Of a DNA stretch of 64,000 nucleotides, positions 19,473-50,975 are shown one piece after another. Each line of letters starts with the position of its first letter. The first letter of the stretch is position 1. The DNA lies in IMG/VR virus record IMGVR_UViG_3300028840_008160, positions 124,001 to 188,000 of that record, one strand, 5' to 3'. The notes beneath the pieces were generated by a model. That model was not told the origin of the DNA. It worked only from the letters and a program-made list of their open reading frames with translations, and ran no database searches. A program made the translations under genes and the position numbers.

Positions 19473-19725
19473 ATCACATAAAGAATTAGTTGATGTACTG
19501 AAAAAAGTACAGACTAGCATTTGTGCTTATAGATCTGCTGCTTTTTGTGATTGTAAATATGGTGTGCAAAATGTTGGAAAATCAACTGAATCTGGTAATG
19601 GTTGTCCTGAAGTTAGAGAAGTAATTGCATTGTTTTCTGTATTAACACCATTTGAATATGAACGGCTTACAAAACGAATTTATAAAGAAAAATTGAAAAA
19701 AGTGAGGGTGTCATGGCACAAATGA
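19459..19725 (+). CDS. Small Cys-rich protein
   Basis: CAY...CDCKYG...GCPE; overlaps both neighbours. Confidence 0.55.
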   Translation: MRKFRSHKELVDVLKKVQTSICAYRSAAFCDCKYGVQNVGKSTESGNGCPEVREVIALFSVLTPFEYERLTKRIYKEKLKKVRVSWHK

Positions 19726-20777: not shown

Positions 20778-20786
20778 GATGAAAAG

Positions 20787-20875: not shown

Positions 20876-21012
20876 TTGAAAGTGGCGCTTTAGAGCAAGA
20901 CTTCAGAAAAAGTAGCTCAGTTGGTAGAGCGTCAGTTTATTCAACTGAATGTCATGGATTCAAATTCCATCTTTTTTACCTTAAAAGGTTTTGTTCACTT
21001 TCGCCCTTTCAA
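20876..21012 (+). ncRNA. Y-RNA-like RNA 1 (closing stem enclosing a tRNA-like cloverleaf)
   Basis: 5' TTGAAAGTGGCG..GAGCAAGAC pairs with 3' GTTTTGTTC..CGCCCTTTCAA; interior has D, anticodon-like and T arms. Confidence 0.65.
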
Positions 21013-23948: not shown

Positions 23949-24034
23949 GGGTGAGTAGCTCAGTTGGTCAGAGCGCCGGGCCGTTAACCCGGAGGCCCAT
24001 TGGGATTTCGTGGGTTCGAATCCCACCTTGCCCT
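23949..24034 (+). tRNA. tRNA-Asn(GTT)-like, C33 and long variable arm
   Basis: ccggg-ccGTTaa-cccgg; 17-nt variable region. Confidence 0.75.
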
Positions 24035-24066
24035 CTTTCTACGCAAATAGATATGATTACTATAAC

Positions 24067-33535: not shown

Positions 33536-33687
33536 AGGAAGTGGTGCTCTAGAATAAGACTTCAGAAAATCTTTTTACAGGTTCGAGTCCTGTTCTCCCC
33601 GCTATTATGGGGAGATAGCCAAATTGGTAAGGCAAAAGATCGCTAATCTTTGATAATTTTCATGGTTTTATTCACTTTCACCCTTTC
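33536..33687 (+). ncRNA. Y-RNA-like RNA 2 with circularly permuted tRNA-like domain (YrlA-like layout)
   Basis: Same closing stem as 20876; interior order T-arm, loop-closed acceptor stem (TCTCCCC/GGGGAGA), D-arm. Confidence 0.7.
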
Positions 33688-33694
33688 TTTTTAT

Positions 33695-33771
33695 GGGCGC
33701 ATAACTCAGCGGTACAGAGTACCTGCCTTACAAGCAGGAGGTCGTAGGTTCAAATCCTACTGTGCCCACCA
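33695..33771 (+). tRNA. tRNA-Val(TAC)
   Basis: cctgc-ctTACaa-gcagg; CCA. Confidence 0.93.
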
Positions 33772-33778
33772 TATTTAT

Positions 33779-33851
33779 CGCGGGGTGTAGCAGTTGGTAG
33801 CTTGTTGGGCTCATAACCCAACGGTCGTCGGTTCGAGTCCGACCCCCGCTA
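33779..33851 (+). tRNA. tRNA-fMet(CAT)
   Basis: CGCGGGG start, 1:72 mismatch, GGG/CCC in anticodon stem. Confidence 0.9.
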
Positions 33852-33921
33852 TTTACGCAGACTTAGATGGCCGGAGTCACTGCCCCTAGGGTATGTAAGG
33901 CCGCATCGACAGTCTGCAAAT

Positions 33922-33957
33922 GCCAGTGTGGCGGAATGGTAGACGCGCTAGTTCTAA
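33922..33957 (+). pseudogene. 5' half of a tRNA-Leu truncated next to endonuclease gene
   Basis: GCCAGTG-TG-GCGGAATGGTAGACGC-GCTAG then no 3' half. Confidence 0.65.
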
Positions 33958-33995
33958 TCTTTTGATATGAGAGTTTCTAATAAAAGGAAGTTCTC

Positions 33996-34748
33996 GTGTA
34001 CAAATGTGAAATATGTGGTAGAAAATTTGAAAAAGCTCAGCAAAAAGGTGGCCATGTTTATTATTGTCGTGCAAAACGTGATGGTATAGATTTACGGCCT
34101 GGCGACAGATTTGCTAAAGGTCGCGGCTGGGCGAAAGGTTTAACAAAAGATACTCATTCTGGTTTGATGAACATGTCAAGGCGGCATTCTGGACGGTTAA
34201 AGGGAAGGACTGATACACCTTATACAACTTGGCGAAAAGATAAAGAAAAAAGTAGAAAAGCAAACTTAAAATTATCAATTACACGAAAACGATTATTTGC
34301 TGACGGCAAATTAACAGTACCTGTTGCTAGCAAACGAGGACAATCGTCAATTTTTATTTATAATAGTAATAGGTATCATTTTCGTAGTAGATACGAGTTT
34401 GTTTTTGCGTTGTTTCTAGCGCACAAAAATATCATATTTAATTATGAAAATGTTCGTGTTGAATACAATAGTATAACAAGAATTTGTGATTTTGAAGTAA
34501 ATGGCAAACTTTACGAAATAAAAGGCTATCATTCTGATAAAGATATAATTGTGAAAAATACATTTACAACTTCAGGATTTGATGTTAAGTTTGTTTATAG
34601 ACCGTTTATCAAATTGGCTAGAAAGTATTTACATCGTCGCGGTTATGACATAAAACATTTGCTAGAACAAATTAAACAATATAGAGATCAAAATCGTATT
34701 TTTGAATTTGAATTTTGCCACAGTGGAGAAATTGGTATACTCGCATGA
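33996..34748 (+). CDS. Putative homing endonuclease (Zn finger + PD-(D/E)XK)
   Basis: CEIC, FRSRYE, CDF...YEIKG; ends inside tRNA-Leu(TAG). Confidence 0.7.
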   Translation: MYKCEICGRKFEKAQQKGGHVYYCRAKRDGIDLRPGDRFAKGRGWAKGLTKDTHSGLMNMSRRHSGRLKGRTDTPYTTWRKDKEKSRKANLKLSITRKRLFADGKLTVPVASKRGQSSIFIYNSNRYHFRSRYEFVFALFLAHKNIIFNYENVRVEYNSITRICDFEVNGKLYEIKGYHSDKDIIVKNTFTTSGFDVKFVYRPFIKLARKYLHRRGYDIKHLLEQIKQYRDQNRIFEFEFCHSGEIGILA

Positions 34749-34799
34749 TTTAGGGTCATGTGCATTTTATGCATAAGGGTTCGAGTCCCTTCTGTGGCA
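34717..34799 (+). tRNA. tRNA-Leu(TAG)
   Basis: catga-ttTAGgg-tcatg; type II. Confidence 0.85.
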
Positions 34800-34885
34800 T
34801 TTAAGGAGGAATGAAATGAGAGTTAAGCTATGTCCTACACAAGTTTTTGATGGCCGAATATGCATGACAAATCAATGTTATGTAT

Positions 34886-34958
34886 AGGGGCATAGCTCAG
34901 GGGTTAGAGCGACGGCCTTAAGCCGTGTCTGTCGTGGGTTCAATTCCCACTGCCCTCA
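34886..34958 (+). tRNA. tRNA-like RNA with 5-nt anticodon loop (CTTAA)
   Basis: Normal D and T arms; acggc-cttaa-gccgt. Confidence 0.6.
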
Positions 34959-35008
34959 TTGTGAAAACTATGAAATCAATAGCATACAATTCTCTAAAAG
35001 GAGATTGT

Positions 35009-35332
35009 ATGAATGAAAAAGACGATGATCTTCGACCAGCGACTAATGATGAAATGATACAACATGCTAAAGAGCTTATTGATAGCTGCGAAACTGAAGA
35101 TGATTATAAAAAAATGGAAAACTTTATGGGTTGTGCAATTATCATTGCAGCTGCAAATCTAGAAGTAAGAGAAGGCGTTGAACAACTTCTTGAGAATAAA
35201 GCTAAAGAATTTGGTTTGAAATATAAACGAATGAGTAGATTTTTTCTTAAACAAAGTGACAAGAAAATCTTAGCTTTAGCAAAAAAGATTGTTAGAATGG
35301 TTTACAAAAAAGTATTGGCAGAAAACATATAA
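35009..35332 (+). CDS. Hypothetical protein
   Basis: SD AGGAG before ATG 35009. Confidence 0.55.
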   Translation: MNEKDDDLRPATNDEMIQHAKELIDSCETEDDYKKMENFMGCAIIIAAANLEVREGVEQLLENKAKEFGLKYKRMSRFFLKQSDKKILALAKKIVRMVYKKVLAENI

Positions 35333-35415
35333 GCCCAGGTGGTGGAATGGCAGACACTGAAGACTTAAAATCTTCTGGGATTTATCCCGTACCGGTTCGA
35401 ATCCGGTCCTGGGCA
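35333..35415 (+). tRNA. tRNA-Leu(TAA)
   Basis: gaaga-ctTAAaa-tcttc; type II. Confidence 0.92.
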
Positions 35416-35423
35416 TTTAGATT

Positions 35424-35942
35424 ATGTCTAAGATTGTGATTAATAGACATGAGCTTAAAAAAGCTGTTGTGCAGTCTAGAACATACAAAGATGTTTTTCG
35501 GCATCTTTGTATTACTGGAACAGGACATCATTATCGTATAGTTAAACGATTAGTAAAGCAGAGTGGTTTGAGCATTGATCATTTTGTTGGTCGAGGATGG
35601 AATAAAGGACTGAAGCTTAAAGGGATTAGACAAAAACCATTAAATGAAATTTTAATTGAAAATTCAACATATACAAATACGAATAGACTTCGTAAGAGAC
35701 TTATTGATGAAGGTATTTTCGAACAAAAATGTAACAATTGTAAACGAACAAAGTGGTGTAATAAGCAAATACCTTTAGAATTAGAACATAAGAATGGAAT
35801 TAAGCATGATTTTAGAATAGAGAATTTAGAACTTTTATGTCCTAATTGTCATGCTCAAACACGATTTTATCGCGGGCGAAATATGAAAAGTGCGAGAAAG
35901 AAAAATGAAGCACATCTGGTTGTTTTTCTATCATGTGTTTAG
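35424..35942 (+). CDS. HNH endonuclease
   Basis: CNNC...LELEHKNG...N.ELLCPNCH. Confidence 0.85.
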   Translation: MSKIVINRHELKKAVVQSRTYKDVFRHLCITGTGHHYRIVKRLVKQSGLSIDHFVGRGWNKGLKLKGIRQKPLNEILIENSTYTNTNRLRKRLIDEGIFEQKCNNCKRTKWCNKQIPLELEHKNGIKHDFRIENLELLCPNCHAQTRFYRGRNMKSARKKNEAHLVVFLSCV

Positions 35943-36010
35943 TGTTGTAGAAGTTATATTACTAATGCCTGCAATTTTTGTTGAGCTGGCATTTACTAGA
36001 AGATTTTTAT

Positions 36011-36084
36011 CGCGGGGTAGAGCAGTCTGGTAGCTCGTTAGGCTCATAACCTAAAGGTCGGCGGTTCAAATCCGCTCCCCGCTA
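36011..36084 (+). tRNA. tRNA-fMet(CAT)
   Basis: CGCGGGG start, 1:72 mismatch, ctCATaa loop. Confidence 0.88.
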
Positions 36085-36088
36085 TTTT

Positions 36089-36164
36089 GCCTCCTTAGCT
36101 CAGTTGGTAGAGCAACTGACTCTTAATCAGTAGGTCGTAGGTTCGATCCCTACAGGGGGTACCA
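36089..36164 (+). tRNA. tRNA-Lys(CTT)
   Basis: actga-ctCTTaa-tcagt; CCA. Confidence 0.93.
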
Positions 36165-36165
36165 A

Positions 36166-36339
36166 TTTACTTGACATTCAGCGAGCCTATTACGCTGGAG
36201 TCTTTAAGGTTTGCATGAGGATAACCGTAATTGGCCTCAATTGAAATGCATAAGCCTGACTGCGAGAGAGTAGGCGGGATCGGTAAAAGTCCGGGGAAGT
36301 ATCTGTGGAAGGTTGCCCTTAAATTCAATGTCAAGTAGG
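36166..36339 (+). ncRNA. Unclassified structured RNA
   Basis: Ends pair (TACTTGACATT/AATGTCAAGTA); GC-richer interior; fills the gap between two tRNAs. Confidence 0.5.
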
Positions 36340-36340
36340 T

Positions 36341-36413
36341 GCGATAGTAACTCAGTTAGTAGAGTATCTGCTTCCCAAGCAGAATGTCGCGGGTTCGAGT
36401 CCCGCCTATCGCT
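36341..36413 (+). tRNA. tRNA-Gly(CCC)
   Basis: tctgc-ttCCCaa-gcaga. Confidence 0.88.
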
Positions 36414-36429
36414 TATTTTGAAAGGAGAG

Positions 36430-36669
36430 ATGATGGGATATGCGATTTTAGGGAAACACAGTATCACTTGTTTTAGAGGCGGAACACCTTTAGCAAATAT
36501 GAAAATGAAGGTGAAAGACAGAAAAAATAACGAGTGGTATTGTAAATGTTCAGAAGAAGAATTCAATCGCTATCCTGATTCTCGATCTGTTGAAGTATAT
36601 GATAATAAAGGACGTTTAGCAAAGAAGTTTCTTAAAGGATTTTTGACAATTGTTGAAATGCGCTCATAG
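36430..36669 (+). CDS. Hypothetical protein
   Basis: SD AAGGAG before ATG 36430. Confidence 0.5.
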   Translation: MMGYAILGKHSITCFRGGTPLANMKMKVKDRKNNEWYCKCSEEEFNRYPDSRSVEVYDNKGRLAKKFLKGFLTIVEMRS

Positions 36670-36732
36670 CTCAATTGGTAGAGCAATGCCCTTTTAAGGC
36701 ATGGGTTTCAGGTTCAAGTCCTGATGGGCGTA
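36660..36732 (+). tRNA. tRNA-Lys(TTT)
   Basis: atgcc-ctTTTaa-ggcat. Confidence 0.9.
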
Positions 36733-36845
36733 TTTAGACTTAAATGATCTCATTTGATATAATTTGGAGGTGCAGAATGTTTAACAAACGGTACAAACGA
36801 AAACGAAAGACATTCTGCCCGTAGTCGTGATGGCTACGGGCTTAT

Positions 36846-36927
36846 GGGCTCGTGGCCAAGTGGTAGCCGAAAGGCGAAGGCAACGGACTTAATCCGTGGA
36901 TCGGGGGTTCGAATCCCTCCGGGCCCA
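36846..36927 (+). tRNA. tRNA-like RNA with 5-nt anticodon loop (CTTAA) and D-loop hairpin insert
   Basis: acgga-cttaa-tccgt; GCC-GAAA-GGC inserted in D loop. Confidence 0.6.
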
Positions 36928-36948
36928 TTAACTTTGGAAAGATTCATA

Positions 36949-37395
36949 ATGGATAAACCGATATTAGGCTTTTTTGGTGAGTACAGGTTCCTTTCAAATT
37001 TTCATTTATGCGAGATTGTTTACAAAGGAATAACATTTCCTAGTACTGAACACGCGTTTCAAGCTGATAAGGCTACAAATGAAGAATTAAGACAATATAT
37101 TGCTGATCTACCTACATGTAGAGCAGCGAAAAAGGCAGGCGGAACAATTGACCTTCGTGCTCATTGGGAAACTGATAAGATTCAAGTAATGATCGACATT
37201 ACTAGAATAAAATATCAGATACCAGAACTTAAAGAAAAATTACTTGCTACTGGGCAAGCATATTTAGAAGAAACAAACACATGGAATGATAAATTTTGGG
37301 GTGTTTGTAATGGTGTTGGACAAAATCAACTCGGTAAGACATTAATGCAAGTGCGATATGAATTAAGATGGATTGGTCAAGACAAATATACTTGA
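36949..37395 (+). CDS. NADAR-family (YbiA-like) protein
   Basis: FLSNF, STEHAFQA.K, LLATG, D.FWG, G.NQLGK.LM.VR. Confidence 0.9.
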   Translation: MDKPILGFFGEYRFLSNFHLCEIVYKGITFPSTEHAFQADKATNEELRQYIADLPTCRAAKKAGGTIDLRAHWETDKIQVMIDITRIKYQIPELKEKLLATGQAYLEETNTWNDKFWGVCNGVGQNQLGKTLMQVRYELRWIGQDKYT

Positions 37396-37582
37396 AAAAA
37401 TGCGTATATGAATCAGAAAGTTTGGAATGTACAAGCTCGCAGAGGTGGTCCATATTGCGAACATTTTAGATGTCCAAGAATCAAGAGAAAGACGGGCAAA
37501 TGTGACGGAAAATGCAGTAAACATGGAACAACAAGCGCTAGAATTGGAATAAAACGAGCTAGACAACATATGAAACAGATAA

Positions 37583-37668
37583 GCCGGGATGGTGGAACGG
37601 CAGACACAACGGACTCAAAATCCGTCGAAGGCAACTTCATGAGGGTTCAAGTCCCTCTCCCGGCACCA
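37583..37668 (+). tRNA. tRNA-Leu(CAA)
   Basis: acgga-ctCAAaa-tccgt; type II; CCA. Confidence 0.93.
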
Positions 37669-37676
37669 TTTTAATT

Positions 37677-38090
37677 ATGAATCTTACGTCAACACCAGTA
37701 AGACGAAAAAATTATTTTGTTGAAGCATTACAGCAAAGCGCTTTACCAGAGCCATTTGCTTTACCAGAGCCATTTGTTACATACAACGACATTCATAATT
37801 TTTTTCGCAAACGAGGATTTAATAATGTACGAATTGAACCTGGTGATTTTGGTAGGATTGATATTTATATAAAAGAGTATTGGTTTAATTTAAATAAGTT
37901 GTTAAAACAAGTTGATGAAGTAAAACTTGTTGGCATATTAGTTTCGTTGCACAGACCAACATTTTGGCAATGGTTAATGACAATAAAAATTGTTAGAGTT
38001 TGTCGATATAAGTTGATAAAAATTGGTCGTCGATATAGAAAAAGATCAAGACCAATTGTTTCAAAATTCGATGTAATAACGGAGGATTAG
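37677..38090 (+). CDS. Hypothetical protein
   Basis: ORF track; tandem ALPEPF duplication. Confidence 0.5.
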   Translation: MNLTSTPVRRKNYFVEALQQSALPEPFALPEPFVTYNDIHNFFRKRGFNNVRIEPGDFGRIDIYIKEYWFNLNKLLKQVDEVKLVGILVSLHRPTFWQWLMTIKIVRVCRYKLIKIGRRYRKRSRPIVSKFDVITED

Positions 38091-38166
38091 GATAACGGTA
38101 ATCAAAAAACAACATATAAAATGGAAGATAGGAAAAAGTAGCGTTAGACGATTTTTAAAAGTTTAT

Positions 38167-38258
38167 GGAGGAGTGCCGGAGTCTGGTTTATCGGAGCAGT
38201 CTTGAAAACTGTCGGTCGTTCACACGGCCCGTAGGTTCAAATCCTACCTCCTCCGCCA
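38167..38258 (+). tRNA. tRNA-Ser(TGA)
   Basis: gcagt-ctTGAaa-actgt; long variable arm; CCA. Confidence 0.93.
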
Positions 38259-38279
38259 TATCTTTGCTAGTAAGAAGTC

Positions 38280-38651
38280 TTGTATGATTTAAAAGGAGAT
38301 GATAGATTGAGAGTTTTAGTGTTAGATGATTCAAAGATTAGATTAATTCAATTCAGACAGAATTTGATTGGTCACAATGTCAGGTGTGTTACAACTGTTA
38401 GAGAGACGATTGATTCTTTGGCAGATGAAGACTGGGATTATTTGTTTTTGGATCATGATCTTGGTGGTCAAGTTAATGTACCATCGGGTCCAGGTACAGG
38501 ATATGAAGTCGCTCAATGGCTAGTTGAACATCCTGATAGACAACCTGAACACATTGTTCTTCATAGTTTTAATGAAAATGGACGAAAGAACATGCAATCA
38601 TTGCTTCCTGAAGCTATGATGTGTCCTGGTGCATGGACAAAAATAAGGTAG
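38280..38651 (+). CDS. Cyclic-phosphate-processing receiver-domain protein
   Basis: VLDD, LFLDHDLG, GYEVA.WL, VLHS.N..G. Confidence 0.75.
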   Translation: MYDLKGDDRLRVLVLDDSKIRLIQFRQNLIGHNVRCVTTVRETIDSLADEDWDYLFLDHDLGGQVNVPSGPGTGYEVAQWLVEHPDRQPEHIVLHSFNENGRKNMQSLLPEAMMCPGAWTKIR

Positions 38652-38732
38652 GTTAGGATAATTGGTAATCCAGCAGTTTCGAAAACTGCCGACCGCAAGG
38701 TCTTGGGGGTTCAAATCCCTCACCTACCGCCA
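38647..38732 (+). tRNA. tRNA-Ser(CGA)
   Basis: gcagt-ttCGAaa-actgc; CCA. Confidence 0.92.
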
Positions 38733-38737
38733 AAATT

Positions 38738-39028
38738 ATGGACGAGCCAGAGTTTAAACAGTTTAAAGAACAGCTTGATCACTTAGATCAAGAAATAATG
38801 ATGGGTACTGTTAAATCTGTTTTGTTTGTTGACGGCCCAAAAGCAGGAGAAACATTGTTGATGAATTGGAAAGATGGTAAGCCTTGTCATCTGAAAATGT
38901 TTATGATTGTGCCCAGAATGTTTAAATTATCTGAGCCAGTAAAAAAAGCTGAATATGAATGGAATATTGATGACGAAGTGTTTGAATTTACAGGACGAAC
39001 AAAAGTTGATTTTGCAAGGGATTTATGA
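38738..39028 (+). CDS. Hypothetical protein
   Basis: ORF track. Confidence 0.5.
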   Translation: MDEPEFKQFKEQLDHLDQEIMMGTVKSVLFVDGPKAGETLLMNWKDGKPCHLKMFMIVPRMFKLSEPVKKAEYEWNIDDEVFEFTGRTKVDFARDL

Positions 39029-39248
39029 ATGGAAGGTATAGAACAATTAACAACTGCATTTGCTGAAATTGAAAAACACGAACTCAAAGTGAATACTATT
39101 ATTTGTACAGCTTGTGGTTGTGTTTTATCTGTTAATGATGATAATAAACCATGTGAACATCTTAGAGAATTAGGGAAAGCGTTTGAATTAAAAGATTGAA
39201 TTATTAAAACAAGGAAAAACAATTGTCTCAAAAGAGCCAGGTAATTCA

Positions 39249-39473
39249 ATGACACCATTGTTGAAGTCGAGGCAACCTGTAAGAATTGCTCCAGTTACAA
39301 TAGATGAAGTTGATGTTGGTGACATCGTATATTGTAAGGTGAGAGGAAATTGTTATACGCATTTGGTGAAAGCAAAAAGTTCTAGAGGTTGTCTAATTGG
39401 CAATAATCATGGACGAATTAATGGTTGGACGAAACAAGTTTACGGCAAAGTCATTGAAATTTTGGAGGGTTAA
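39249..39473 (+). CDS. Small peptidase S24/S26-fold-like protein
   Basis: GNSMTP just at the start, VGDIVYCKV, HLVK; true start may lie upstream. Confidence 0.45.
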   Translation: MTPLLKSRQPVRIAPVTIDEVDVGDIVYCKVRGNCYTHLVKAKSSRGCLIGNNHGRINGWTKQVYGKVIEILEG

Positions 39474-39553
39474 ACCCGTAACTGGTAGCGGTGTAGATTG
39501 GAAATCTACGGCTTGTAAAAGTCCTGAGGGTTCAAGTCCCTCACCCTCCGCCA
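39464..39553 (+). tRNA. tRNA-Ser(GGA)
   Basis: gtaga-ttGGAaa-tctac; CCA. Confidence 0.9.
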
Positions 39554-39582
39554 TCTTTGTATTTCAGTATGATTAGATAGAC

Positions 39583-40008
39583 ATGAATCAAATACTTTGC
39601 GAAACACCGATGCATTTTATAGCAAAAGCATTGTCAAATGTTATATTTCTTGAAGCTAGATGGTTGCCTGATAACAATGATAAAGGATTGAATGTTAAGG
39701 ACATTATAGATTTACCTTATCATGTAATAGAATCAGTGCCTGTGATAATAACTCCATCATTAGAAATAGTGATAACTAAACCAATAGAATTGAAATTTGA
39801 AAACAAGACAATGTTCTACTGTGTTTTTTATCATCAAAGTTCAAAGTCAGTTTGTATTCCTAATTGGTTTCCAATGGTTATGTGGGGAGAGCCAACAACA
39901 TCATACACAATTTCTAGCAAAAATATTCCAAGTAATAGTATTGCTGGTATCCAGATGTCAGATATACCGTCTTTTAATAAGTTTGACATATTAGTAGGCG
40001 AGAATTGA
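39583..40008 (+). CDS. Hypothetical protein
   Basis: ORF track; promoter-like motif ends 7 nt upstream. Confidence 0.55.
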   Translation: MNQILCETPMHFIAKALSNVIFLEARWLPDNNDKGLNVKDIIDLPYHVIESVPVIITPSLEIVITKPIELKFENKTMFYCVFYHQSSKSVCIPNWFPMVMWGEPTTSYTISSKNIPSNSIAGIQMSDIPSFNKFDILVGEN

Positions 40009-40059
40009 TATAGATTTGATAATGAGATTCACAATAAATTTAACATACAGAAGGGCTTT

Positions 40060-40881
40060 ATGGACACACAAGTAATTGAAAAGAAATTCGAGTCGATGGG
40101 AGCTCGAGTGAAATTTTCGGAACCTGCAGTTCGCGATGGCAATCTGTCGATTGATATTCGTCGTGATAAGGAAGGTGAATACTTCGATTTGAGAGTCAAA
40201 AAAGAGATTGAGATGTTAGTACTTGATGTTCAAAAAGCTGATCGACATCTTCTTCTCATGGCACGTGATCCGGATAATCCGAAAGCAAAGTTTCTTTGCG
40301 GGCATGATGAACGTCACTGGTTCACATGCGCAATTCCTGAAGGCAAGGTTACTTCGGTTATTCAAGCAAAACAGGCATTGAAGCCGAAGGAACTACAGAA
40401 TCTTGAAGCACGTGAAGGATTGAAAACAAAAAGAGCTCATAAACGTCATCGCCGGTTGAATTCTGGAATAAAAGTTCACCGTCAAGGTGAGTTCATGTTT
40501 ATTCCGCACAAAGATTTTCAGCCGTCAAAAGGATTTTCAACAGTTGTTTTGAAGAATGAGCCAATGCAAAGAGGCGGTGGAAATGCGCATATGGCTCAGT
40601 TCCTTTACAGGCGTGGTGGAACAACTGTTTGGGTGTCAGCTTATTCGCCTGAAGCAAGAAATGGATTGACACAAAGGCAGTATGATTCAATAAGAAAGAG
40701 AGATCCAGAATCGGGACGTTACAATTGGCGGACAATGGTTCGTGATCCTGAAGTATTTGTAAAAGGTCATATCACACATGTCGAACACAAAACATTGGAT
40801 CTCGGTGATGTGTGGCACAAAGTAGTATTAAATACAGAAAATCAGGCTCGTGCTGCTAGAAATGTAGCATTTCTTGACTAA
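40060..40881 (+). CDS. Hypothetical basic protein
   Basis: 273 aa; FLCGHDERHWF, RQGEFMF.P, EH..L motifs. Confidence 0.7.
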   Translation: MDTQVIEKKFESMGARVKFSEPAVRDGNLSIDIRRDKEGEYFDLRVKKEIEMLVLDVQKADRHLLLMARDPDNPKAKFLCGHDERHWFTCAIPEGKVTSVIQAKQALKPKELQNLEAREGLKTKRAHKRHRRLNSGIKVHRQGEFMFIPHKDFQPSKGFSTVVLKNEPMQRGGGNAHMAQFLYRRGGTTVWVSAYSPEARNGLTQRQYDSIRKRDPESGRYNWRTMVRDPEVFVKGHITHVEHKTLDLGDVWHKVVLNTENQARAARNVAFLD

Positions 40882-40883
40882 TT

Positions 40884-40957
<74 letters not shown>

Positions 40958-41011
40958 TTGTTCGAATCTTTATAATTCAACTCATAACAGAATAAGGAAT
41001 AATGTCGTTAT

Positions 41012-41032
41012 CTACGCTAATCTACATGATTA
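41012..41032 (+). promoter_or_regulatory. Promoter-like motif heading tRNA operon 3
   Basis: ctacg-ctaatctac-atgatta. Confidence 0.65.
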
Positions 41033-41052
41033 TAGTATCACGAGGATAAATC

Positions 41053-41169
41053 ATGAAAAACTTAACGCAGACATATCATTTTATATCAAGGCCTGATGCG
41101 CAGGTCAGTGATATGGACATGCGTCAAGTCACCTGTGCCGCAACAACAATTAGAAACGGAGCGACATAG
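41053..41169 (+). CDS. Attenuator leader peptide 3 (MKNLTQTYHFISRPDAQVSDMDMRQVTCAATTIRNGAT)
   Basis: SD GAGGA; has cognate codons for all 12 tRNA species in operon 3. Confidence 0.78.
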   Translation: MKNLTQTYHFISRPDAQVSDMDMRQVTCAATTIRNGAT

Positions 41170-41234
41170 GTAGGGTTTGGAATCAAAATTATTGAATTTC
41201 AAGCCCTGCCGAGGAAACTCGACGGGGCTTTTTT
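41169..41234 (+). terminator. Attenuator 3 antiterminator/terminator
   Basis: GGTAGGGTTTGGA (41169-41181) pairs with TTCAAGCCCTGCC (41198-41210), left arm of terminator 41201-41234. Confidence 0.8.
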
Positions 41235-41267
41235 AATGAGGAGACTAGAATGAAAATGACAATAAAT

Positions 41268-41343
41268 ACCAGTGTAGTTCAGTTGGTAGAACGTTGGAAT
41301 CATAATCCAAAAGTCGGGAGTTCGAGTCTCCCCGCTGGTACCA
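41268..41343 (+). tRNA. tRNA-Met(CAT), elongator (or Ile2)
   Basis: ttgga-atCATaa-tccaa; CCA. Confidence 0.85.
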
Positions 41344-41453
41344 CAATCACTTTAACAAAGGATCATCAAGTGCCAAATAAAACAAGGAATACTGGTTATT
41401 TGATGTATGACACTTTGACGCAAAACAACAACATTATGAAAGGATTGTAGGAT

Positions 41454-42023
41454 ATGTCTTCAGTAATTGTATTAACACAGAACTGGCAATACTGGGATGA
41501 GGTTGATGTTGGTAAAGTTGTCAAATGGTTTTTAAAAGGTAAAATCAGGGTTGTTGCGGCTGATGAAAACGAAAAAATCAAGTGTTCGTTGGAAATCAAA
41601 CGGCCGCTGGTTGTACAATTACTGAAGTTTGCTGGATACAAGATCAAAAGTGATGAAGTGAAATGGAGTAAAGAAGCAGTGTTCCAGCGTGACAAGAATA
41701 TTTGTCAATTCTGGCACTATGATGAAATGGGGAAGAAATTCAAATATACTTGTACCGCAGATGAAAGAACTCTTGAACATATCATTCCTGTTTCAAGAGG
41801 AGGAACTAACACTTTTGAGAATACTGCTTGCGCATGTACGAGGTGTAACGTTGTTGTCAAAGGTAATAAAACACCTGAAGAAGCTGGATTGAAATTGATT
41901 AGACAGCCTTTTGTACCAAGAAATAAGAAAGGACAGTTCGCGACAATTCAATTCACTTACGACCCAAATAAGGTGTCGCATAGATTTTACATGGAGAAGA
42001 TTTTGGGTCAAATGGTAGAATGA
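41454..42023 (+). CDS. HNH endonuclease
   Basis: VFQRD, TLEHIIPVSRGG.N.FEN...AC..CN..KG. Confidence 0.85.
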   Translation: MSSVIVLTQNWQYWDEVDVGKVVKWFLKGKIRVVAADENEKIKCSLEIKRPLVVQLLKFAGYKIKSDEVKWSKEAVFQRDKNICQFWHYDEMGKKFKYTCTADERTLEHIIPVSRGGTNTFENTACACTRCNVVVKGNKTPEEAGLKLIRQPFVPRNKKGQFATIQFTYDPNKVSHRFYMEKILGQMVE

Positions 42024-42047
42024 GCTGGTAGAAATACCAGCTCGTAT

Positions 42048-42120
42048 GCCACCATAGCTCAGCTGGTAGAGCACCTCACTTGTAATGAGGACGTCGCGGG
42101 TTCGATCCCTGCTGGTGGCT
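42048..42120 (+). tRNA. tRNA-Thr(TGT)
   Basis: cctca-ctTGTaa-tgagg. Confidence 0.93.
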
Positions 42121-42189
42121 TTTCTCTGAAAGCAACGAGTTCAAAACTATCTACTAGCTTTATAGTTTTAATACTATAAGGAGGTAGAT

Positions 42190-43077
42190 ATGATGGACCA
42201 AAAACATAAATGTAAGTTTTGTGATAAGTCATTTGAAACAGGACAAAAGCTTGGAACACATATCGCTTTTATCCACAAACGCAATCAAAAAGCGATAAAT
42301 GAAGCTCTTATAAGAAAAAGAATTACGATTACTAGAATTTGTGAAGTTTGTGGAAACAAATTTGATATTGAGCAAATTGTTAATAAAGATGGTTCGATAA
42401 AACTTGGAGGACGACGACGTTGTTCTACAAAATGTAGTAAAACACGAGAGTTTACTAAGGAACAAAATAAGAAAAAAGGTGGAAACAGAAAACGAACGTG
42501 TTATAATCGAGTATGTGAACAATGTGGTAAGCCTTTTACAACGACAAGAAAGAAAAAGAGATTTTGTAATAGAAGTTGTGCAATAACATTTAGAAATAAG
42601 CAGCCACAGAATAAGTTACAATGGTTGAAAATTTGCATTAAGACAACTTCGCATAAAGCACTTAGTGGAGTCACTGGAATACGAAAAGATGTTTGTAAGA
42701 AAACAAAATTCAAATCTTCGTGGGAAGCTGATTTTGCCAGAATACTTAATTATAACGGTTTGAAATGGGAGTATGAGCCAAAGACGTTCAAATTAAAAGA
42801 TGGTCGAAATTATACGCCTGATTTTAGAGTTAATGGTTCATATATTGAAATAAAGAATTTTTTACGAAAATCAGATGTTAATAGACACGAGTTGTTTGCA
42901 GAATGTAATGAAAGATTTTATTTGATTTGTGGATATCAAATTTTTTATGGTTTGATATCATTATATATAGACAATATCAGATTTGAATGTGAAACAAAGG
43001 CTAGGAGAAGTATTCAAAGTAATGATATTGATGTTGAAAGTGCGAAGAAGATTTTTGCTGGTGTAGCTCAGTGGTAG
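42190..43077 (+). CDS. Putative homing endonuclease (Zn fingers + PD-(D/E)XK)
   Basis: Several CxxC; FKSSWEA, YEPKTF, YTPDF, IEIK; ends inside tRNA-Thr. Confidence 0.75.
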   Translation: MMDQKHKCKFCDKSFETGQKLGTHIAFIHKRNQKAINEALIRKRITITRICEVCGNKFDIEQIVNKDGSIKLGGRRRCSTKCSKTREFTKEQNKKKGGNRKRTCYNRVCEQCGKPFTTTRKKKRFCNRSCAITFRNKQPQNKLQWLKICIKTTSHKALSGVTGIRKDVCKKTKFKSSWEADFARILNYNGLKWEYEPKTFKLKDGRNYTPDFRVNGSYIEIKNFLRKSDVNRHELFAECNERFYLICGYQIFYGLISLYIDNIRFECETKARRSIQSNDIDVESAKKIFAGVAQW

Positions 43078-43131
43078 AGCACTACTTTGGTAAAGTAGAG
43101 GTCGTGGGATCGTTACCCATCTCCAGCTCCA
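43057..43131 (+). tRNA. tRNA-Thr(GGT)
   Basis: ctact-ttGGTaa-agtag; atypical T loop ATCGTTA; CCA. Confidence 0.85.
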
Positions 43132-43190
43132 CTTTAACGAAAGGATGACATAATGGCACCATTCAGTATTTAACTGATAAGGAGGCTATT

Positions 43191-43421
43191 ATGTCTCATC
43201 CCCGTAATAGACGGGAACGCTTTCTGTTTGGAAAGCTGAAAGGTGAAAAACGTGCTAGAGGGATGTCGGCAGCAGAGACAGTTGTCCCTGAATGGTTTGA
43301 AAGAACAAGCCGAATGCTTCGAAACACAACAAAAATTTGTTCTAGTTTAAGATGTTGTGGCAATCCTCGTAGAAGAGGAGAACTTACATTACAAGAAATA
43401 AAGGAGAATCAGAAAATATAG
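43191..43421 (+). CDS. Small basic Cys-containing protein
   Basis: SD AAGGAGG; CS...CCGNPRR...TLQE. Confidence 0.65.
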   Translation: MSHPRNRRERFLFGKLKGEKRARGMSAAETVVPEWFERTSRMLRNTTKICSSLRCCGNPRRRGELTLQEIKENQKI

Positions 43422-43496
43422 CGCTGTAACTCAGTTGGTTAGAGTGGCACTCTGATAAGGTGTTGGTCGGTGGTTCAAATCCACTCAGCGCTACCA
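43420..43496 (+). tRNA. tRNA-Ile(GAT)
   Basis: gcact-ctGATaa-ggtgt; CCA. Confidence 0.9.
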
Positions 43497-43500
43497 TAAT

Positions 43501-43577
<77 letters not shown>

Positions 43578-43586
43578 TAAAGTTTC

Positions 43587-43662
43587 GGGGCCATAGCTCA
43601 ATTGGGAGAGCACCAGCTTTGCAAGCTGGGGGTTCGGGGTTCAAGCCCCCGTGGTTCCACCA
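43587..43662 (+). tRNA. tRNA-Ala(TGC)
   Basis: G3.U70; ccagc-ttTGCaa-gctgg. Confidence 0.93.
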
Positions 43663-43727
43663 ATTTATGCCGGCATATTGCTGATTAAAGCGACAGCTGC
43701 GCTTAAAAGCGATCCCTGCCGGTTCCT

Positions 43728-43800
43728 GGGGCTGTAGCTCAGTTGGGAGAGCGCAACGTTCGCAATGTTGAGGTCGCAGGTTCGATCCCTGTCAGCTCCA
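43728..43800 (+). tRNA. tRNA-Ala(CGC)
   Basis: G3.U70; caacg-ttCGCaa-tgttg. Confidence 0.92.
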
Positions 43801-43842
43801 AATGGAAATTAGTAGAAAGGTTTTACATATAAGAATAAAAAC

Positions 43843-43915
43843 GGGGCCATAGCTCAGTTGGGAGAGCGCGACGCTGGCAGCGTTGAGGTCGCAGGTTCGA
43901 TCCCTGTTGGCTCCA
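43843..43915 (+). tRNA. tRNA-Ala(GGC)
   Basis: G3.U70; cgacg-ctGGCag-cgttg. Confidence 0.92.
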
Positions 43916-43924
43916 TTAAATTTT

Positions 43925-44001
43925 GGACCGGTAGTTCAGTTGGTTAGAACGCTGGCCTGTCAAGCCAGAGGTCGCGAGTTCAAGTCTCGTCCGGTCCGCC
44001 A
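43925..44001 (+). tRNA. tRNA-Asp(GTC)
   Basis: ctggc-ctGTCaa-gccag; CCA. Confidence 0.94.
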
Positions 44002-44009
44002 ATTTTTGT

Positions 44010-44083
44010 GCCTCCTTAGCTCAGCTGGATAGAGCAACGGATTTCTAATCCGTAGGTCGTAGGTTCAAATCCTACAGGAGGTG
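44010..44083 (+). tRNA. tRNA-Arg(TCT)
   Basis: acgga-ttTCTaa-tccgt. Confidence 0.92.
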
Positions 44084-44094
44084 CTATATTTTTT

Positions 44095-44168
44095 GGGCTA
44101 GTAACTCAGTTGGTTAGAGTAGCGGACTCATAATCCGTCAGTCCGGGGTTCAAGTCCCTGCTAGCCCA
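44095..44168 (+). tRNA. tRNA-Ile2/Met(CAT)
   Basis: GGGCTAG Ile-type acceptor; ctCATaa loop. Confidence 0.85.
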
Positions 44169-44172
44169 TTTT

Positions 44173-44246
44173 GCTCCTATAGCTCAATTGGATAGAGTGC
44201 GGGTTTCCTAAACCTGAGGTTGTAGGTTCAAATCCTACTAGGAGCA
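44173..44246 (+). tRNA. tRNA-Arg(CCT)
   Basis: cgggt-ttCCTaa-acctg. Confidence 0.9.
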
Positions 44247-44504
44247 TTTGTAAAGTTATGTTGATAACCTCATAAATTTTAAGAAAAGTTAAACATAAGT
44301 AAAGGTGAGGGCATCAACATGGATGAGTTAAAACAACAACTTATTGAAGAAGCCACAATAAAACATGAAAAAATCTACCCTGTAGGAAGAAGAGAAGGTT
44401 TTGAAGAATGTTTTACAGTGCATGAAGACAAATTAGTTTTTTGGTTCAATAGAGAAGATCAATCTACTAGTATTCTAACAAAACAAATTTCGAACTGAGG
44501 AGAT

Positions 44505-44741
44505 ATGGATTCTGAAAAAGAAAAAACGATTAAGTTAATCATTGCAGAAAAGTTAGGTGTATCAGAGAACAAAGTCGTACCACAAATGGATTTTGTTAAT
44601 GATCTTGGTGCTGATTCGCTTGATATGGTGGAATTAATTATGGCATATGAAGATCATTTTGATATTGATATTCCTGATGCTGAAGCAGAACATATCAAAA
44701 CTGTAAAAGATGCAATAGAATTACTTGATCGTAAGATATGA
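44505..44741 (+). CDS. acpP: Acyl carrier protein
   Basis: DLGADSLDMVELIMA.E..F.I.IPD. Confidence 0.93.
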   Translation: MDSEKEKTIKLIIAEKLGVSENKVVPQMDFVNDLGADSLDMVELIMAYEDHFDIDIPDAEAEHIKTVKDAIELLDRKI

Positions 44742-45061
44742 ATTTAAAAATAATGGCAGATTTTTGTTCGTCAGGCATCTGGCGATTAGATACTGGTGGA
44801 ATGGTTGATTACGATAAACTCAATTTACCTACAGAATTGGTAAAAGAGTTTGAAGAATGGATTGAGTATTATGATAGTGAATGTACTAGTAAGATAACGT
44901 ATTTAGTATTAGTAAAGAAAGAAACATCACTACACAATAGAGGACGAAAATTAGCAAAAAAGATCAAGTTATTATTTCCTAATAGTCGAATTGAGTATTG
45001 GGGAGAAACGGTAAGAGATGGTAAGATTAGTTTGATAAAAGAAGTAATTGAGGGCCCGTAG
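44738..45061 (+). CDS. Hypothetical protein
   Basis: ATGA overlap with acpP. Confidence 0.55.
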   Translation: MNLKIMADFCSSGIWRLDTGGMVDYDKLNLPTELVKEFEEWIEYYDSECTSKITYLVLVKKETSLHNRGRKLAKKIKLLFPNSRIEYWGETVRDGKISLIKEVIEGP

Positions 45062-45125
45062 CTCAGATGGTTAGAGTACTTGCTTGACATGCAAGGGGTC
45101 GCTGGTTCAATTCCAGTCGGGCCCA
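45052..45125 (+). tRNA. tRNA-Val(GAC)
   Basis: cttgc-ttGACat-gcaag. Confidence 0.9.
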
Positions 45126-45141
45126 TTTTTTATGTAGGAAG

Positions 45142-45921
45142 ATGAAGATGAAAGTATATGTTGCAGGTGACACTCATGGCGGTATGCGCAACGATTTTAG
45201 CAAGCTTGGAGCCATGAGATTTCCAGAAGGTAAAGAATTGACAATAGATGATGTTGTCATAGTTTGTGGTGACTTTGGTCTAACATGGCCTGACACAATT
45301 GAACAAGGCAAAGGACAACAAGAATATTGGATGAAGTGGTTATTATCTAAGCCGTGGACTACATGTTTTGTAGATGGTAATCATGAGAATCATGATCATT
45401 TGTTGAGTTTGCCAGTTAAAGAAATGTTTGGTGGCAAAGTTGGTGTCCTTCACAATAAGATTTATCATTTGAAACGGGGTGAAATCTACAAGTTTGATGA
45501 CAAGAAAATCTTTTGCATGGGTGGAGCAAAGACAACTGATATGCCTGGTCGTATTGAAGGATATAGTTGGTTTCGTGCTGAGATTCCATCATCGGAAGAA
45601 ATGTACTATGCTATTGACAATTTAGAAACTCATGGAAATGAAGTTGATTTTATTGTGGCTCATACATTGCCAGATAGCATGATTAAATGTTATGTGTACA
45701 AGAACGATTTGACTATTGACTTTGATAATCCAGGGCATATGTTGATTGTTGATGAAGTGACGAAAAATCTGTATGAACGATATACTGATCCAACAGCAAG
45801 ATTTTTGAGGGAAGTCTGTAGTAGAGTGAAATTTAGTCATTTCTATTGTGGTCATTTTCATGATGATTGCACAATGAGTAAGTTTACAATCCTTTATGAT
45901 AATGTTGTTAGAATCATTTAA
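45142..45921 (+). CDS. Calcineurin-like metallophosphoesterase
   Basis: GDTHG, GDFG, DGNHE, GHFH. Confidence 0.9.
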   Translation: MKMKVYVAGDTHGGMRNDFSKLGAMRFPEGKELTIDDVVIVCGDFGLTWPDTIEQGKGQQEYWMKWLLSKPWTTCFVDGNHENHDHLLSLPVKEMFGGKVGVLHNKIYHLKRGEIYKFDDKKIFCMGGAKTTDMPGRIEGYSWFRAEIPSSEEMYYAIDNLETHGNEVDFIVAHTLPDSMIKCYVYKNDLTIDFDNPGHMLIVDEVTKNLYERYTDPTARFLREVCSRVKFSHFYCGHFHDDCTMSKFTILYDNVVRII

Positions 45922-45934
45922 GAAAGGATGACAG

Positions 45935-46690
45935 ATGAGACTAATCACTTTGCTTCTATTGTTAATTTCTTGTACTACTATATCTGAATTTACAAATGTA
46001 TCTGTTACAAACAATTCAGCAGACAATGTGCAATGTTTTTTAACTGTTCCTGGTGGTGATAGTCCTATTGGAAAATTTGGTATTTCTTCAGATAGTATTA
46101 AACCTGGTGGAACAACAGGTTGGTTTTGGTTAAAAAAAGGTCAAACAGCAAATTTGAATAGTACCAAACCAGCTATGGGTTATATAATCACTTTTGGAGA
46201 TCAGAATCAAAATTGTTCTCAGGCAATAGCTAATGGTTGGCCGACAGGAATAAATAATTTTGAGTTTACAATTAATTGCTGGGACAAAACATCAAATCCC
46301 AGTGCAACTGGTGGGAATGAATCTGCAGATATTACAAATGTTGACGGTGTCAACGCAATCATTGGTTATTCTGTTGATACTACTTCGAGTGTGGGAAGAA
46401 AATATTGGGATTATTCTCTTACAGATGATTCTGGAAAACTTTTAATGTTTGAATCTGTTAAGAATAGCGGAGAATTATTTGGTGATTGTAATGTGCCCGG
46501 AATCTTTCCTTATGATTGTGATGTTTGTTATACTCATTCTATAGATGCACCAAAACCTTGCTTTGAGTTTCCAAAAGATTACAAATGTTCTGATTCGCTT
46601 GCGCAGGGCAAACTATATACTTGTCAGATTAACCGGCCAGGGCAAGGTGGCACAATTAAAGTTGAGTTTTTTGGATTTATTCAAAAATAA
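45935..46690 (+). CDS. Exported Cys-rich lipoprotein, possibly thaumatin-like
   Basis: LISC lipobox-like; VTNN, FEFT, ADITNVDGVNA echo thaumatin motifs. Confidence 0.5.
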   Translation: MRLITLLLLLISCTTISEFTNVSVTNNSADNVQCFLTVPGGDSPIGKFGISSDSIKPGGTTGWFWLKKGQTANLNSTKPAMGYIITFGDQNQNCSQAIANGWPTGINNFEFTINCWDKTSNPSATGGNESADITNVDGVNAIIGYSVDTTSSVGRKYWDYSLTDDSGKLLMFESVKNSGELFGDCNVPGIFPYDCDVCYTHSIDAPKPCFEFPKDYKCSDSLAQGKLYTCQINRPGQGGTIKVEFFGFIQK

Positions 46691-46699
46691 GTTAAAAAG

Positions 46700-46720
46700 C
46701 TACGACTATTTACATGATTA
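46700..46720 (+). promoter_or_regulatory. Promoter-like motif heading tRNA operon 4
   Basis: ctacg-actatttac-atgatta. Confidence 0.65.
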
Positions 46721-46768
46721 TTAAACTACGGATTGATAATCCTTTGATATTTAATCTAATGACAGAAA

Positions 46769-46860
46769 TTGAAAGTGGTGCTTAGAGGAAAACTTCAGAA
46801 TAATAACCTATCGCTAATTGGTAATTTGTTTCTCGTTTTCTTCGATCATCACCCTTTCAA
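46769..46860 (+). ncRNA. Y-RNA-like RNA 3 (minimal, no tRNA domain)
   Basis: TTGAAAGTGGTG..GAGGAAAAC-TTCAGAA pairs with GTTTTCTTC..CACCCTTTCAA. Confidence 0.6.
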
Positions 46861-46882: not shown

Positions 46883-46945
46883 ATGGTATACGCAAATAAC
46901 ATTCGCCGACCCCAGCCGCAACAACCACGGAGATTGTATGCATAG
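46883..46945 (+). CDS. Attenuator leader peptide 4 (MVYANNIRRPQPQQPRRLYA)
   Basis: SD AAGGA; run CGC CGA CCC CAG CCG CAA CAA CCA CGG matches all downstream anticodons. Confidence 0.82.
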   Translation: MVYANNIRRPQPQQPRRLYA

Positions 46946-50966: not shown

Positions 50967-50975
50967 CTATACTAT

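Follow-up and report, generated by a model that had tools for sequence, protein, structure and literature searches.

The three RNA elements described here lie in a 64,000-nt stretch of DNA (hereafter the window), bases 124001-188000 of a 329.8-kb IMG/VR virus record (IMGVR_UViG_3300028840_008160; 35% G+C, CheckV completeness 67%). We found that they belong to a family of structured RNAs with covarying helices, linked to a gene pair that encodes a protein with a modelled Ro60 fold and an ARPP-1 domain protein. We consider it probable (roughly 0.68) that the three elements are paralogous candidate Y RNAs of a phage-borne, highly divergent Ro60 ribonucleoprotein (RNP). The particle that Ro60 forms with its Y RNAs is conserved and serves RNA quality control; its functions in bacteria and viruses are still poorly understood. 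The elements and the neighbouring genes are listed below, the bit scores being those of covariance model R2, whose origin is given further on.

20878..21010, + strand: copy 1 (93.9 bits)
33537..33687, + strand: copy 2 (66.9 bits)
46771..46858, + strand: copy 3 (49 bits)
17868..19472, + strand: divergent Ro60-like protein, 534 aa, with a TROVE-type helical ring and a vWA domain; proposed RNA partner
19459..19725, + strand: small open reading frame (ORF), 88 aa, between the Ro-like and ARPP-1 genes; kept only in the closest relatives
19713..20777, + strand: ARPP-1 domain protein, 354 aa (PF20208, 89.9 bits against a cut-off of 27)

The elements share one scaffold and differ in the payload that it carries. 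A sequence-only reading had proposed a three-member family of this kind from a set of motifs, all of which proved to be present within 2 nt of where it had placed them. A motif scan of the 329.8-kb record looked for three boxes, AAGTGGYGCT on the 5' side, ACTTCAGAA, and CRCCCTTTC on the 3' side, which coincided at the three loci listed and nowhere else. R2 gave no other strong match in this genome; its weaker matches (36308-36491, 41237-41368 and others, at most 28.7 bits) were plain tRNAs with flanks and no scaffold. Minimum-free-energy (MFE) folding recovered the same scaffold in all three copies (z = -4.5, -2.4 and -4.1). From the ends inward it consists of a 5-bp helix (H1a), one bulged U on the 5' strand, a 4-bp helix GGYG/CRCC (H1b), an internal loop of about 5+5 nt, a helix of 9-11 bp (H2) and the letters CAGAA, followed by the payload; in copies 1 and 3 the terminal helix reaches 7 bp by using flanking UUG/CAA. 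The covariations named in the sequence-only reading are correct, with GGCG/CGCC set against GGUG/CACC, and GAGCAAGAC, GAAUAAGAC and GAGGAAAAC each have a complement when G-U pairs are tolerated. The parts of the three copies are placed as follows.

Copy 1, 20878-20882 / 21006-21010: H1a
Copy 1, 20883: bulged U
Copy 1, 20884-20887 / 21002-21005: H1b
Copy 1, 20888-20892 and 20997-21001: internal loops
Copy 1, 20893-20903 / 20986-20996: H2
Copy 1, 20904-20905: unpaired CA
Copy 1, 20906-20980: payload, a normal-order tRNA-like cloverleaf (ARAGORN call; Rfam tRNA 64 bits, above threshold)
Copy 2, 33537-33541 / 33683-33687: H1a
Copy 2, 33542: bulged U
Copy 2, 33543-33546 / 33679-33682: H1b
Copy 2, 33552-33562 / 33664-33673: H2
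Copy 2, 33577-33593: T arm of the payload, a permuted tRNA
Copy 2, 33594-33615: acceptor stem of the payload
Copy 2, 33618-33633: D arm of the payload
Copy 2, 33635-33651: anticodon-arm-like hairpin of the payload
Copy 3, 46771-46775 / 46854-46858: H1a
Copy 3, 46776: bulged U
Copy 3, 46777-46780 / 46850-46853: H1b
Copy 3, 46785-46793 / 46835-46843: H2
Copy 3, 46796-46800: CAGAA
Copy 3, 46806-46822: payload, a short hairpin with loop AUCGCUAAU, common to copy 2

Matches to tRNA and YrlA models, together with the MFE folds, bear out the three payloads as they had been described, namely a cloverleaf in normal order (copy 1), a tRNA in circularly permuted order (copy 2) and a short hairpin (copy 3). 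In copy 1, the cloverleaf has an acceptor stem of A and U only that opens straight into the scaffold, an anticodon loop UUAUUCA and an encoded ACC. In copy 2, the acceptor stem has 7 bp and is closed by an 8-nt loop; its payload is a complete permuted tRNA and, with its anticodon-like arm, contains more than the YrlA layout. The stretch ATCGCTAAT is common to copies 2 and 3 (33639-33647 and 46810-46818), as claimed. The core of the sequence-only reading, a structured non-coding RNA family with one closing stem, swappable payloads and a relationship to YrlA, is supported. In copy 1, we also observed one low-depth metagenome contig in which 20910 is followed directly by 21001; the 90 nt missing between them comprise most of the cloverleaf and the 3' strand of H2. 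This junction, seen in a single contig whose 24-nt side has 85% likeness, probably comes from another strain or element and not from a processed form.

Conservation in relatives was assessed in loci around Ro-like homologues, collected from assemblies, IMG/VR and JGI metagenomes. The sequence-only reading had suggested building a covariance model and searching phage genomes with it, and this brought out more than 30 further members in related phage contigs. R2 was built from a MAFFT alignment (A7) of 19 exactly bounded elements, on which RNAalifold recovers the closing stem with double or compensatory changes at 6 of 8 pairs. In 519 kb of loci with a Ro-like gene it gave 30 matches with E < 1e-3, each on the strand of that gene, whereas a control of 702 kb of unrelated viral loci with a chance 5' motif gave none at E ≤ 0.01; nothing was found in bacterial and metagenome-assembled genome (MAG) loci with very distant Ro-like homologues. 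In the model-fitted alignment of 30 members, 97.0% of cells pair compared with 74.5% after shuffling (0/500), all 8 pairs of H1 show double changes, and sliding the register lowers pairing to 38-60%. The independent MAFFT result agrees. A lack of conserved structure in relatives, along with a lack of discrete transcripts, had been named as the outcome that would speak against the family; what the relatives have is compensatory changes in every closing-stem pair.

The second helix covaries too (GGGAGUUGG/CCAACUUCC, AGGAAUCUU/AGGAUUCCU and AAUAGACGG/CCGUUUGUU). Because MAFFT misaligned the 3' half of copy 3 and shifted the H2 register, RNAalifold missed this helix, and it was therefore tested sequence by sequence: H2 strands form 8.1 contiguous bp with their own partner, compared with 5.8 with the partners of other members. 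Amid the covarying helices, certain 5'-strand letters are invariant across the family: the bulge has AG-U, the internal loop has CU, and H2 is followed by CAG(A/G)A. RNAalifold proposed that the invariant CU pairs with AG in CAGAA; we rejected this, as nothing varies there and the pairing is sterically unlikely across H2. One might suppose that the elements have no function at the RNA level and represent either a dispersed repeat or what is left of a mobile element, as the tRNA island in which they lie is rich in homing endonuclease genes, HNH and others. This supposition is effectively refuted by the covariation, with compensatory changes in three helices persisting across relatives whose Ro-like proteins are 25-85% identical, and it fits poorly with the constant strand and constant position of the elements relative to one gene pair.

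The linkage to that pair, which the sequence-only reading had proposed to test as co-occurrence with the vWA/ARPP genes, holds across many phage contigs. Copy 1 lies 1.4 kb downstream of the Ro-like gene, and the relatives' elements lie 0.03-5 kb away, on the same strand and often adjacent. Locus L007 (Ro-like protein 84% identical) has a copy-1 orthologue at the same place. Two loci at about 50% identity, L011 and L012, have four tandem elements each, starting less than 100 nt past the Ro-like stop codon and placed within 0.1-0.8 kb downstream of that gene; together they show all three payload classes. Six or seven elements are interleaved with the genes in L025, in the order RNA-RNA-...-Ro-RNA-ARPP-RNA, and L022, L028 and L029 carry elements too. 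Weaker matches with the same layout occur 250-470 nt upstream of the Ro-like start in nine contigs with Ro-like proteins about 25% identical. Searches of whole records placed all four matches beside the Ro-like gene in one case (G003) and the best match 3.4 kb from it in another (G002, a complete genome of 175 kb). A held-out 398-kb NCBI contig (L211, Ro-like protein 52% identical) yielded three new members, which score 63-83 bits and follow the Ro-ARPP pair at a distance of 3-5 kb.

Other ways of searching were tried and set aside. The exact DNA pattern of the 5' half had 6 matches in IMG/VR, all in one coding gene of unrelated phages and with no 3' complement, and these are chance matches. 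A looser 15-nt pattern gave, among the matches listed, chance ones only; none passed R2, and they were hence used as the negative control. A purely structural descriptor (helix-bulge-helix-loop-helix) was unspecific, with 335 matches in the window against about 260 in shuffles, and adding sequence anchors to it brought a gain only by eye. An earlier model (R1), for which two short members were used, was too narrow; its performance was poor, above all when filters were switched off.

We then turned to the 534-aa protein, which has no match in Pfam and no sequence match in the PDB (phmmer, hmmsearch), even when searched as a 29-sequence profile. An AlphaFold2 model built on 29 homologues (predicted local distance difference test score 83, predicted template modelling score 0.81) shows a HEAT-repeat ring closed by a vWA domain that bears a MIDAS (metal-ion-dependent adhesion site). 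The MIDAS sequence DxSxS, at residues 343-347, is invariant in the 29 homologues. The top 13 Foldseek matches in the PDB were all Ro60/TROVE structures, at probability 1.0. The model aligned best with the Ro60 of Thermus phage phiLo (VIA-align, Z 17.5 over 401 residues, root-mean-square deviation 4.0 Å), followed by the Ro60 proteins of Xenopus, human and D. radiodurans (Z 13-14, about 405-417 residues aligned), and structural matches to the vWA domain only reached Z 11.6 at most. In the Swiss-Prot set of the AlphaFold database, the leading matches were RO60 of Deinococcus, mouse, Xenopus, C. elegans and human, together with Tetrahymena p80. The protein that the sequence-only reading had called 'vWA' is thus, on its structural model, a full-length Ro60-like fold, which explains the YrlA resemblance of the RNAs. 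Its family comprises 640 clusters at 50% identity (E ≤ 1e-3).

An ARPP-1 homologue adjoins the Ro-like gene in essentially all of about 55 loci (tblastn), and in one 828-aa protein (P0173) a Ro-like domain (residues 8-432) is fused to an ARPP-2 domain (residues 452-721), which supports a functional Ro-ARPP partnership. The paper that defines ARPP describes other neighbourhoods and gives no TROVE partner (PMC9503650). This partnership raises the question of whether ARPP-1, and not the Ro-like protein, is the direct partner of the RNAs, or acts on them as its substrate, modifying or de-modifying the scaffold or the CCA end. Besides the near-constant adjacency and the fusion, such a role is suggested by the L025 elements, which flank the ARPP gene on both sides, by a NADAR gene in the island that hints at ADP-ribose chemistry, and by the prediction that ARPP is an enzyme acting on ribose or ADP-ribose moieties (PMC9503650). 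Yet ARPP is without known RNA-binding activity and occurs in many contexts unrelated to RNA (PMC9503650), and the Ro fold has a documented binding mode for bulged terminal helices. We regard ARPP-1 as quite unlikely to be the direct partner in place of the Ro-like protein. A role for ARPP-1 on the RNA would be compatible with binding of the scaffold by the Ro-like protein, and a three-part RNP is likely.

Comparison with known systems places the phage elements close to Y RNAs in layout and apart from them in sequence. In metazoan hY1, a terminal helix is interrupted by a single 5'-strand bulge a few pairs from the end and is followed by a short helix, an internal loop, a further helix and a variable effector loop. 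The phage scaffold parallels this layout; metazoan Y RNAs (hY1-hY5, Xenopus Y3) differ in having a conserved GGUCCGA, transcription by pol III, a La-binding U-tail and no tRNA-like domain. Bacterial and phage Y RNAs beside Ro60 are established; what defines a Y RNA is the long terminal stem that contains its Ro site, in which Ro60 contacts mainly the 5' strand (PMC4201824). The invariant 5'-strand letters of the phage family, set amid covarying helices, fit this mode of contact. As with YrlA and YrlB (RF02553; PMC4201824), the phage RNAs are encoded near a Ro60-type gene, on the same strand and as several paralogues per genome, and their 5' and 3' ends pair in a long stem with a bulged helix and a variable internal or apical part. 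The tRNA-like module of YrlA aligns with 33577-33633 of copy 2 (T arm, loop-closed acceptor stem, D arm), copies 1 and 3 are without this layout, and copy 3 resembles YrlB as a simple hairpin. Among Rfam families other than tRNA, YrlA matches the permuted members best, at 25.5 bits for copy 2 (tRNA, 28.9 bits) and 37.3, 28.6 and 26.6 bits for relatives.

The phage RNAs differ from YrlA and YrlB in lacking GNCGAAN0-1G, in whose place they have another invariant 5'-strand signature, AGU...CU...CAGAA. Some carry a complete normal-order cloverleaf opening into the stem, and the permuted ones keep an anticodon arm and use two break points. Their partner protein is invisible to Pfam TROVE and paired with ARPP-1 in essentially all loci. 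No canonical YrlA was found beside the distant Ro-like genes, including bacterial Embleya and MAG loci. The closest known phage system is that of phiLo, whose Ro60 binds two phage-encoded Y-like RNAs, Yrl1 and Yrl2, and host PNPase (PMC12135203; PDB 9KOP, 9L5Y). It shares with the system described here a phage-encoded Ro60, which is the best structural match of the 534-aa protein, and Y-like RNAs beside the gene. In contrast, the phiLo RNAs are without tRNA modules and hold CGAA in an internal bulge, no ARPP partner has been described for phiLo, and the two proteins have only about 11% sequence identity. What is new relative to known Ro/Y systems is the payload architectures and the ARPP partner; the logic is common to all, and neither the RNA nor the protein is recognised by sequence-defined tests.

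The tRNA modules bear on what the scaffold is for. N73-CCA is encoded after the 3' strand of the acceptor in 12 of 31 modules, with about 0.5 expected, and 7 of these 12 are permuted members that have the CCA inside the loop closing the acceptor stem. By analogy, these ends suggest that the modules are probably cut by RNase P and 3'-processing enzymes, exposing the CCA end; processing by RNase P and at the 3' side has been shown at the acceptor loop of M. smegmatis YrlA (PMC4201824), and the acceptor loop of the phage RNAs may be such a site. Two break points are used, one between anticodon arm and T arm (copy 2) and one between D arm and anticodon arm (L011_b, L012_c and L025). In some permuted members (L012:11884-12057 and L211:15973-16150), the loop closing the acceptor holds an inserted hairpin of 30-50 nt just after an encoded GCCA; it resembles an intervening sequence that separates the module's 3' end from its 5' end.

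From these features it could be argued that the scaffold is the leader-trailer helix of unusual tRNA precursors, normal and permuted, which directs or delays their maturation (for example by RNase P and 3' trimming, with RtcB-type joining for permuted genes), the Ro-like protein being a mere neighbour or a precursor chaperone. The tRNA scores of the payloads (64 bits in copy 1), the encoded CCA, also inside permuted acceptor loops, the position of the elements inside tRNA arrays and an RtcB ligase gene 3 kb downstream would all fit. Permuted tRNA genes of the Cyanidioschyzon merolae type also have the 3' half (T arm, acceptor 3' strand) ahead of the 5' half (the 5' strand of the acceptor and the D arm), and CCA is often encoded in the loop that connects the two halves. 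However, the precursor ends of those genes form a bulge-helix-bulge that is cut and ligated into a normal tRNA, whereas the ends of the phage RNAs form a conserved long bulged stem that is common to members without a tRNA. Indeed, the short-hairpin members (copy 3, L011_a, L012_b and L025 6562-6632) retain the whole scaffold but contain no tRNA that could mature, and the break points would leave a long extra arm and not a normal tRNA. Judged as a decoding tRNA, copy 1 has neither a purine at position 37 nor an anticodon fixed among orthologues (loop UUAUUCA, anticodon AUU, in copy 1; UUAAUCA, AAU, in L007; C37 in both), and the modules look like mimics from their sequences. The invariance of the 5'-strand letters while the helices covary fits a protein-binding site. 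A precursor role for the scaffold is therefore unlikely in our judgement, albeit the alternative to which we give most weight.

Copies 1 and 3 share a further setting, each standing upstream of a tRNA array. The motif AAAAGCTACGA, which had been taken for a promoter, exists and occurs outside coding sequence only upstream of these two copies (20779-20808 and 46695-46705 of the window, about 85-105 nt away). No sigma-70-like site was found at these regions. Upstream of copy 1 the motif falls in a possible mini-ORF, MKSYDFHHD, and L007 (12928-12966) has MKSYDFCGDYVF, differing by synonymous codon changes, which hint at a translated upstream peptide and not a promoter. Downstream of the two copies lie the following features.

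21055-21138, + strand: leader ORF after copy 1, 27 codons, rich in Ser, Asn, Phe, Thr, Tyr and Cys
21173-21203, + strand: terminator-like hairpin and U-run after copy 1, followed by tRNAs Phe, Phe, Asn, Ser, Cys, Asn
46883-46945, + strand: leader ORF after copy 3, 20 codons, rich in Pro, Gln and Arg
46971-47005, + strand: terminator after copy 3, with U-run (context to 47015), followed by tRNAs Pro, Gln, Pro, Gln, Gln, Arg, Pro

The 3' end of the first leader ORF, GATCAGTGG, is complementary to the 5' arm of the terminator, CCACTGATC, and so provides an anti-terminator; L007 has the same arrangement of leader ORF and terminator after its copy-1 orthologue. These units look like leader-peptide attenuators that would sense the supply of the tRNAs they control. 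From their position ahead of such attenuators, it is reasonable to suppose, as the sequence-only reading did, that copies 1 and 3 would be made even with the tRNAs off. Y-like RNAs at the 5' end of leader-peptide-attenuated tRNA operons suggest a coupling between the sensing of tRNA supply and tRNA surveillance. That the elements are instead cis-acting 5' leader structures regulating these attenuators, and not free-standing RNAs, would account for copies 1 and 3, L007_1 and L022_2, all directly upstream of a leader ORF, terminator and tRNA array. It would not account for copy 2, which lies between two tRNA genes with no leader ORF, nor for the elements of L011, L012 and L025, which form tandem arrays by the Ro-like gene with no attenuator, and the scaffold is independent of its downstream context. 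We therefore consider a purely cis-acting role very unlikely.

Several points weigh against the three elements being Y RNAs of the Ro-like protein. Pfam TROVE (PF05731) has no match in the whole record and was undetected in 19 of 19 Ro-like family members scanned. The canonical Ro-binding motif (GGUCCGA, GNCGAAN0-1G or CGAA) is absent from the three copies and their relatives, and Rfam YrlA scores, at 25-37 bits, fall far below the gathering threshold of 69 bits, which was reached nowhere in the window or in the relatives scanned. The distance to the Ro-like gene is 14 kb for copy 2 and 27 kb for copy 3, and in L008, which has a Ro-like protein 63% identical and an ARPP gene, the 10 kb to each side contain no element. 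The linkage to ARPP-1 is no less tight than that to Ro, and the RNAs' actual partner could be ARPP-1. The E-values of R2 are rough, and the pairing counts of the 30-member alignment are somewhat inflated by its being fitted to the model structure. Finally, the sequencing runs containing the region are DNA metagenomes only and give no transcript evidence; the RNA runs listed match only the neighbouring tRNA-Phe, and from other organisms.

If the elements are Y RNAs, the shared scaffold would be the handle bound by the Ro-like protein (17868-19472), made up of the terminal helix with its 1-nt 5'-strand bulge, the invariant 5'-strand letters, the second covarying helix and the CAG(A/G)A junction. 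The variable payload would be the effector end, tRNA-shaped in copies 1 and 2 and a hairpin resembling an anticodon loop in copy 3. It may tether Ro to tRNA-recognising enzymes or serve as a tRNA decoy or competitor, as has been proposed for bacterial YrlA. The rsr-yrlBA-rtcBA operon, which the phage island resembles in having RtcB nearby, responds to tRNA damage, and its YrlA was proposed as a competitor of an anticodon nuclease (PMC7790460). The RNP would work with the neighbouring ARPP-1 enzyme, in an island of about 56 tRNA genes, RtcB, NADAR, cREC and an RNase T-like protein, a setting that points to surveillance or repair of tRNAs during infection.

On this reading, tRNA-rich phages would hold a big Ro60-like family missed by standard domain models. 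That family would gain a cognate RNA family with a different recognition signature, and both would be tied to ARPP, an orphan enzyme predicted to act in the chemistry of ADP-ribose or ribose. The natural swaps of payload on one scaffold would be a ready experimental series on the role of the tRNA-like domain of Y RNAs. A wider possibility, which we advance tentatively and rate as doubtful, is that a large unannotated clade of phage Ro60-like proteins (about 640 clusters) assembles with ARPP-1, to which it is sometimes fused, and with a modular RNA handle into a three-part RNP. Its interchangeable tRNA cargoes (cloverleaves, two permutations with encoded CCA, and anticodon-like hairpins) would then be decoys, sensors or adaptors that protect or repair phage tRNAs against host anticodon nucleases or RNA damage of the ADP-ribose type. 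If true, it would amount to a counter-defence use of the Ro/Y system with a new code for Ro-RNA recognition.

The surrounding genome is rich in tRNA genes. In the window there are 56 tRNA genes as well as a tmRNA and a group I intron, almost all of its genes are on the + strand, and a search of deposited phage genomes found no close relative of the record. Genes for RNA and nucleotide enzymes lie downstream of the ARPP-1 gene or among the tRNA genes.

24010..26496, + strand: RtcB RNA ligase with an intein (Intein_splicing / Hint matches at residues ~91-457), the gene 3 kb downstream of the ARPP-1 gene
36844-37395: NADAR gene, among tRNA genes
38280-38651: cREC_REC (cyclic-phosphate-processing receiver) gene, among tRNA genes
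45142-45921: metallophosphoesterase gene, among tRNA genes
52560-53171: RNase T-like exonuclease gene, among tRNA genes

Together with the Ro-like and ARPP genes, these make up an island of RNA repair and ADP-ribose processing. Several of the tRNA calls are unusual. Two tRNA-Asn (GUU) calls, at 21614-21701 and 23949-24035, are 87-88 nt long with long variable arms, unusual for Asn; GUU or AUU anticodon-like loops also occur in several Y-like payloads of relatives. The genes at 27440-27511, 34885-34959 and 50894-50967 include suppressor-type tRNAs (CUA, UUA) and one call with a four-base anticodon (cttg, 8-nt loop), and long ORFs read through with the standard code despite the suppressor-type tRNAs. 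Finally, the tmRNA match (53241-53625, 102.7 bits) adjoins the group I intron match (53610-53851, 94.1 bits), the two overlapping by 16 nt.

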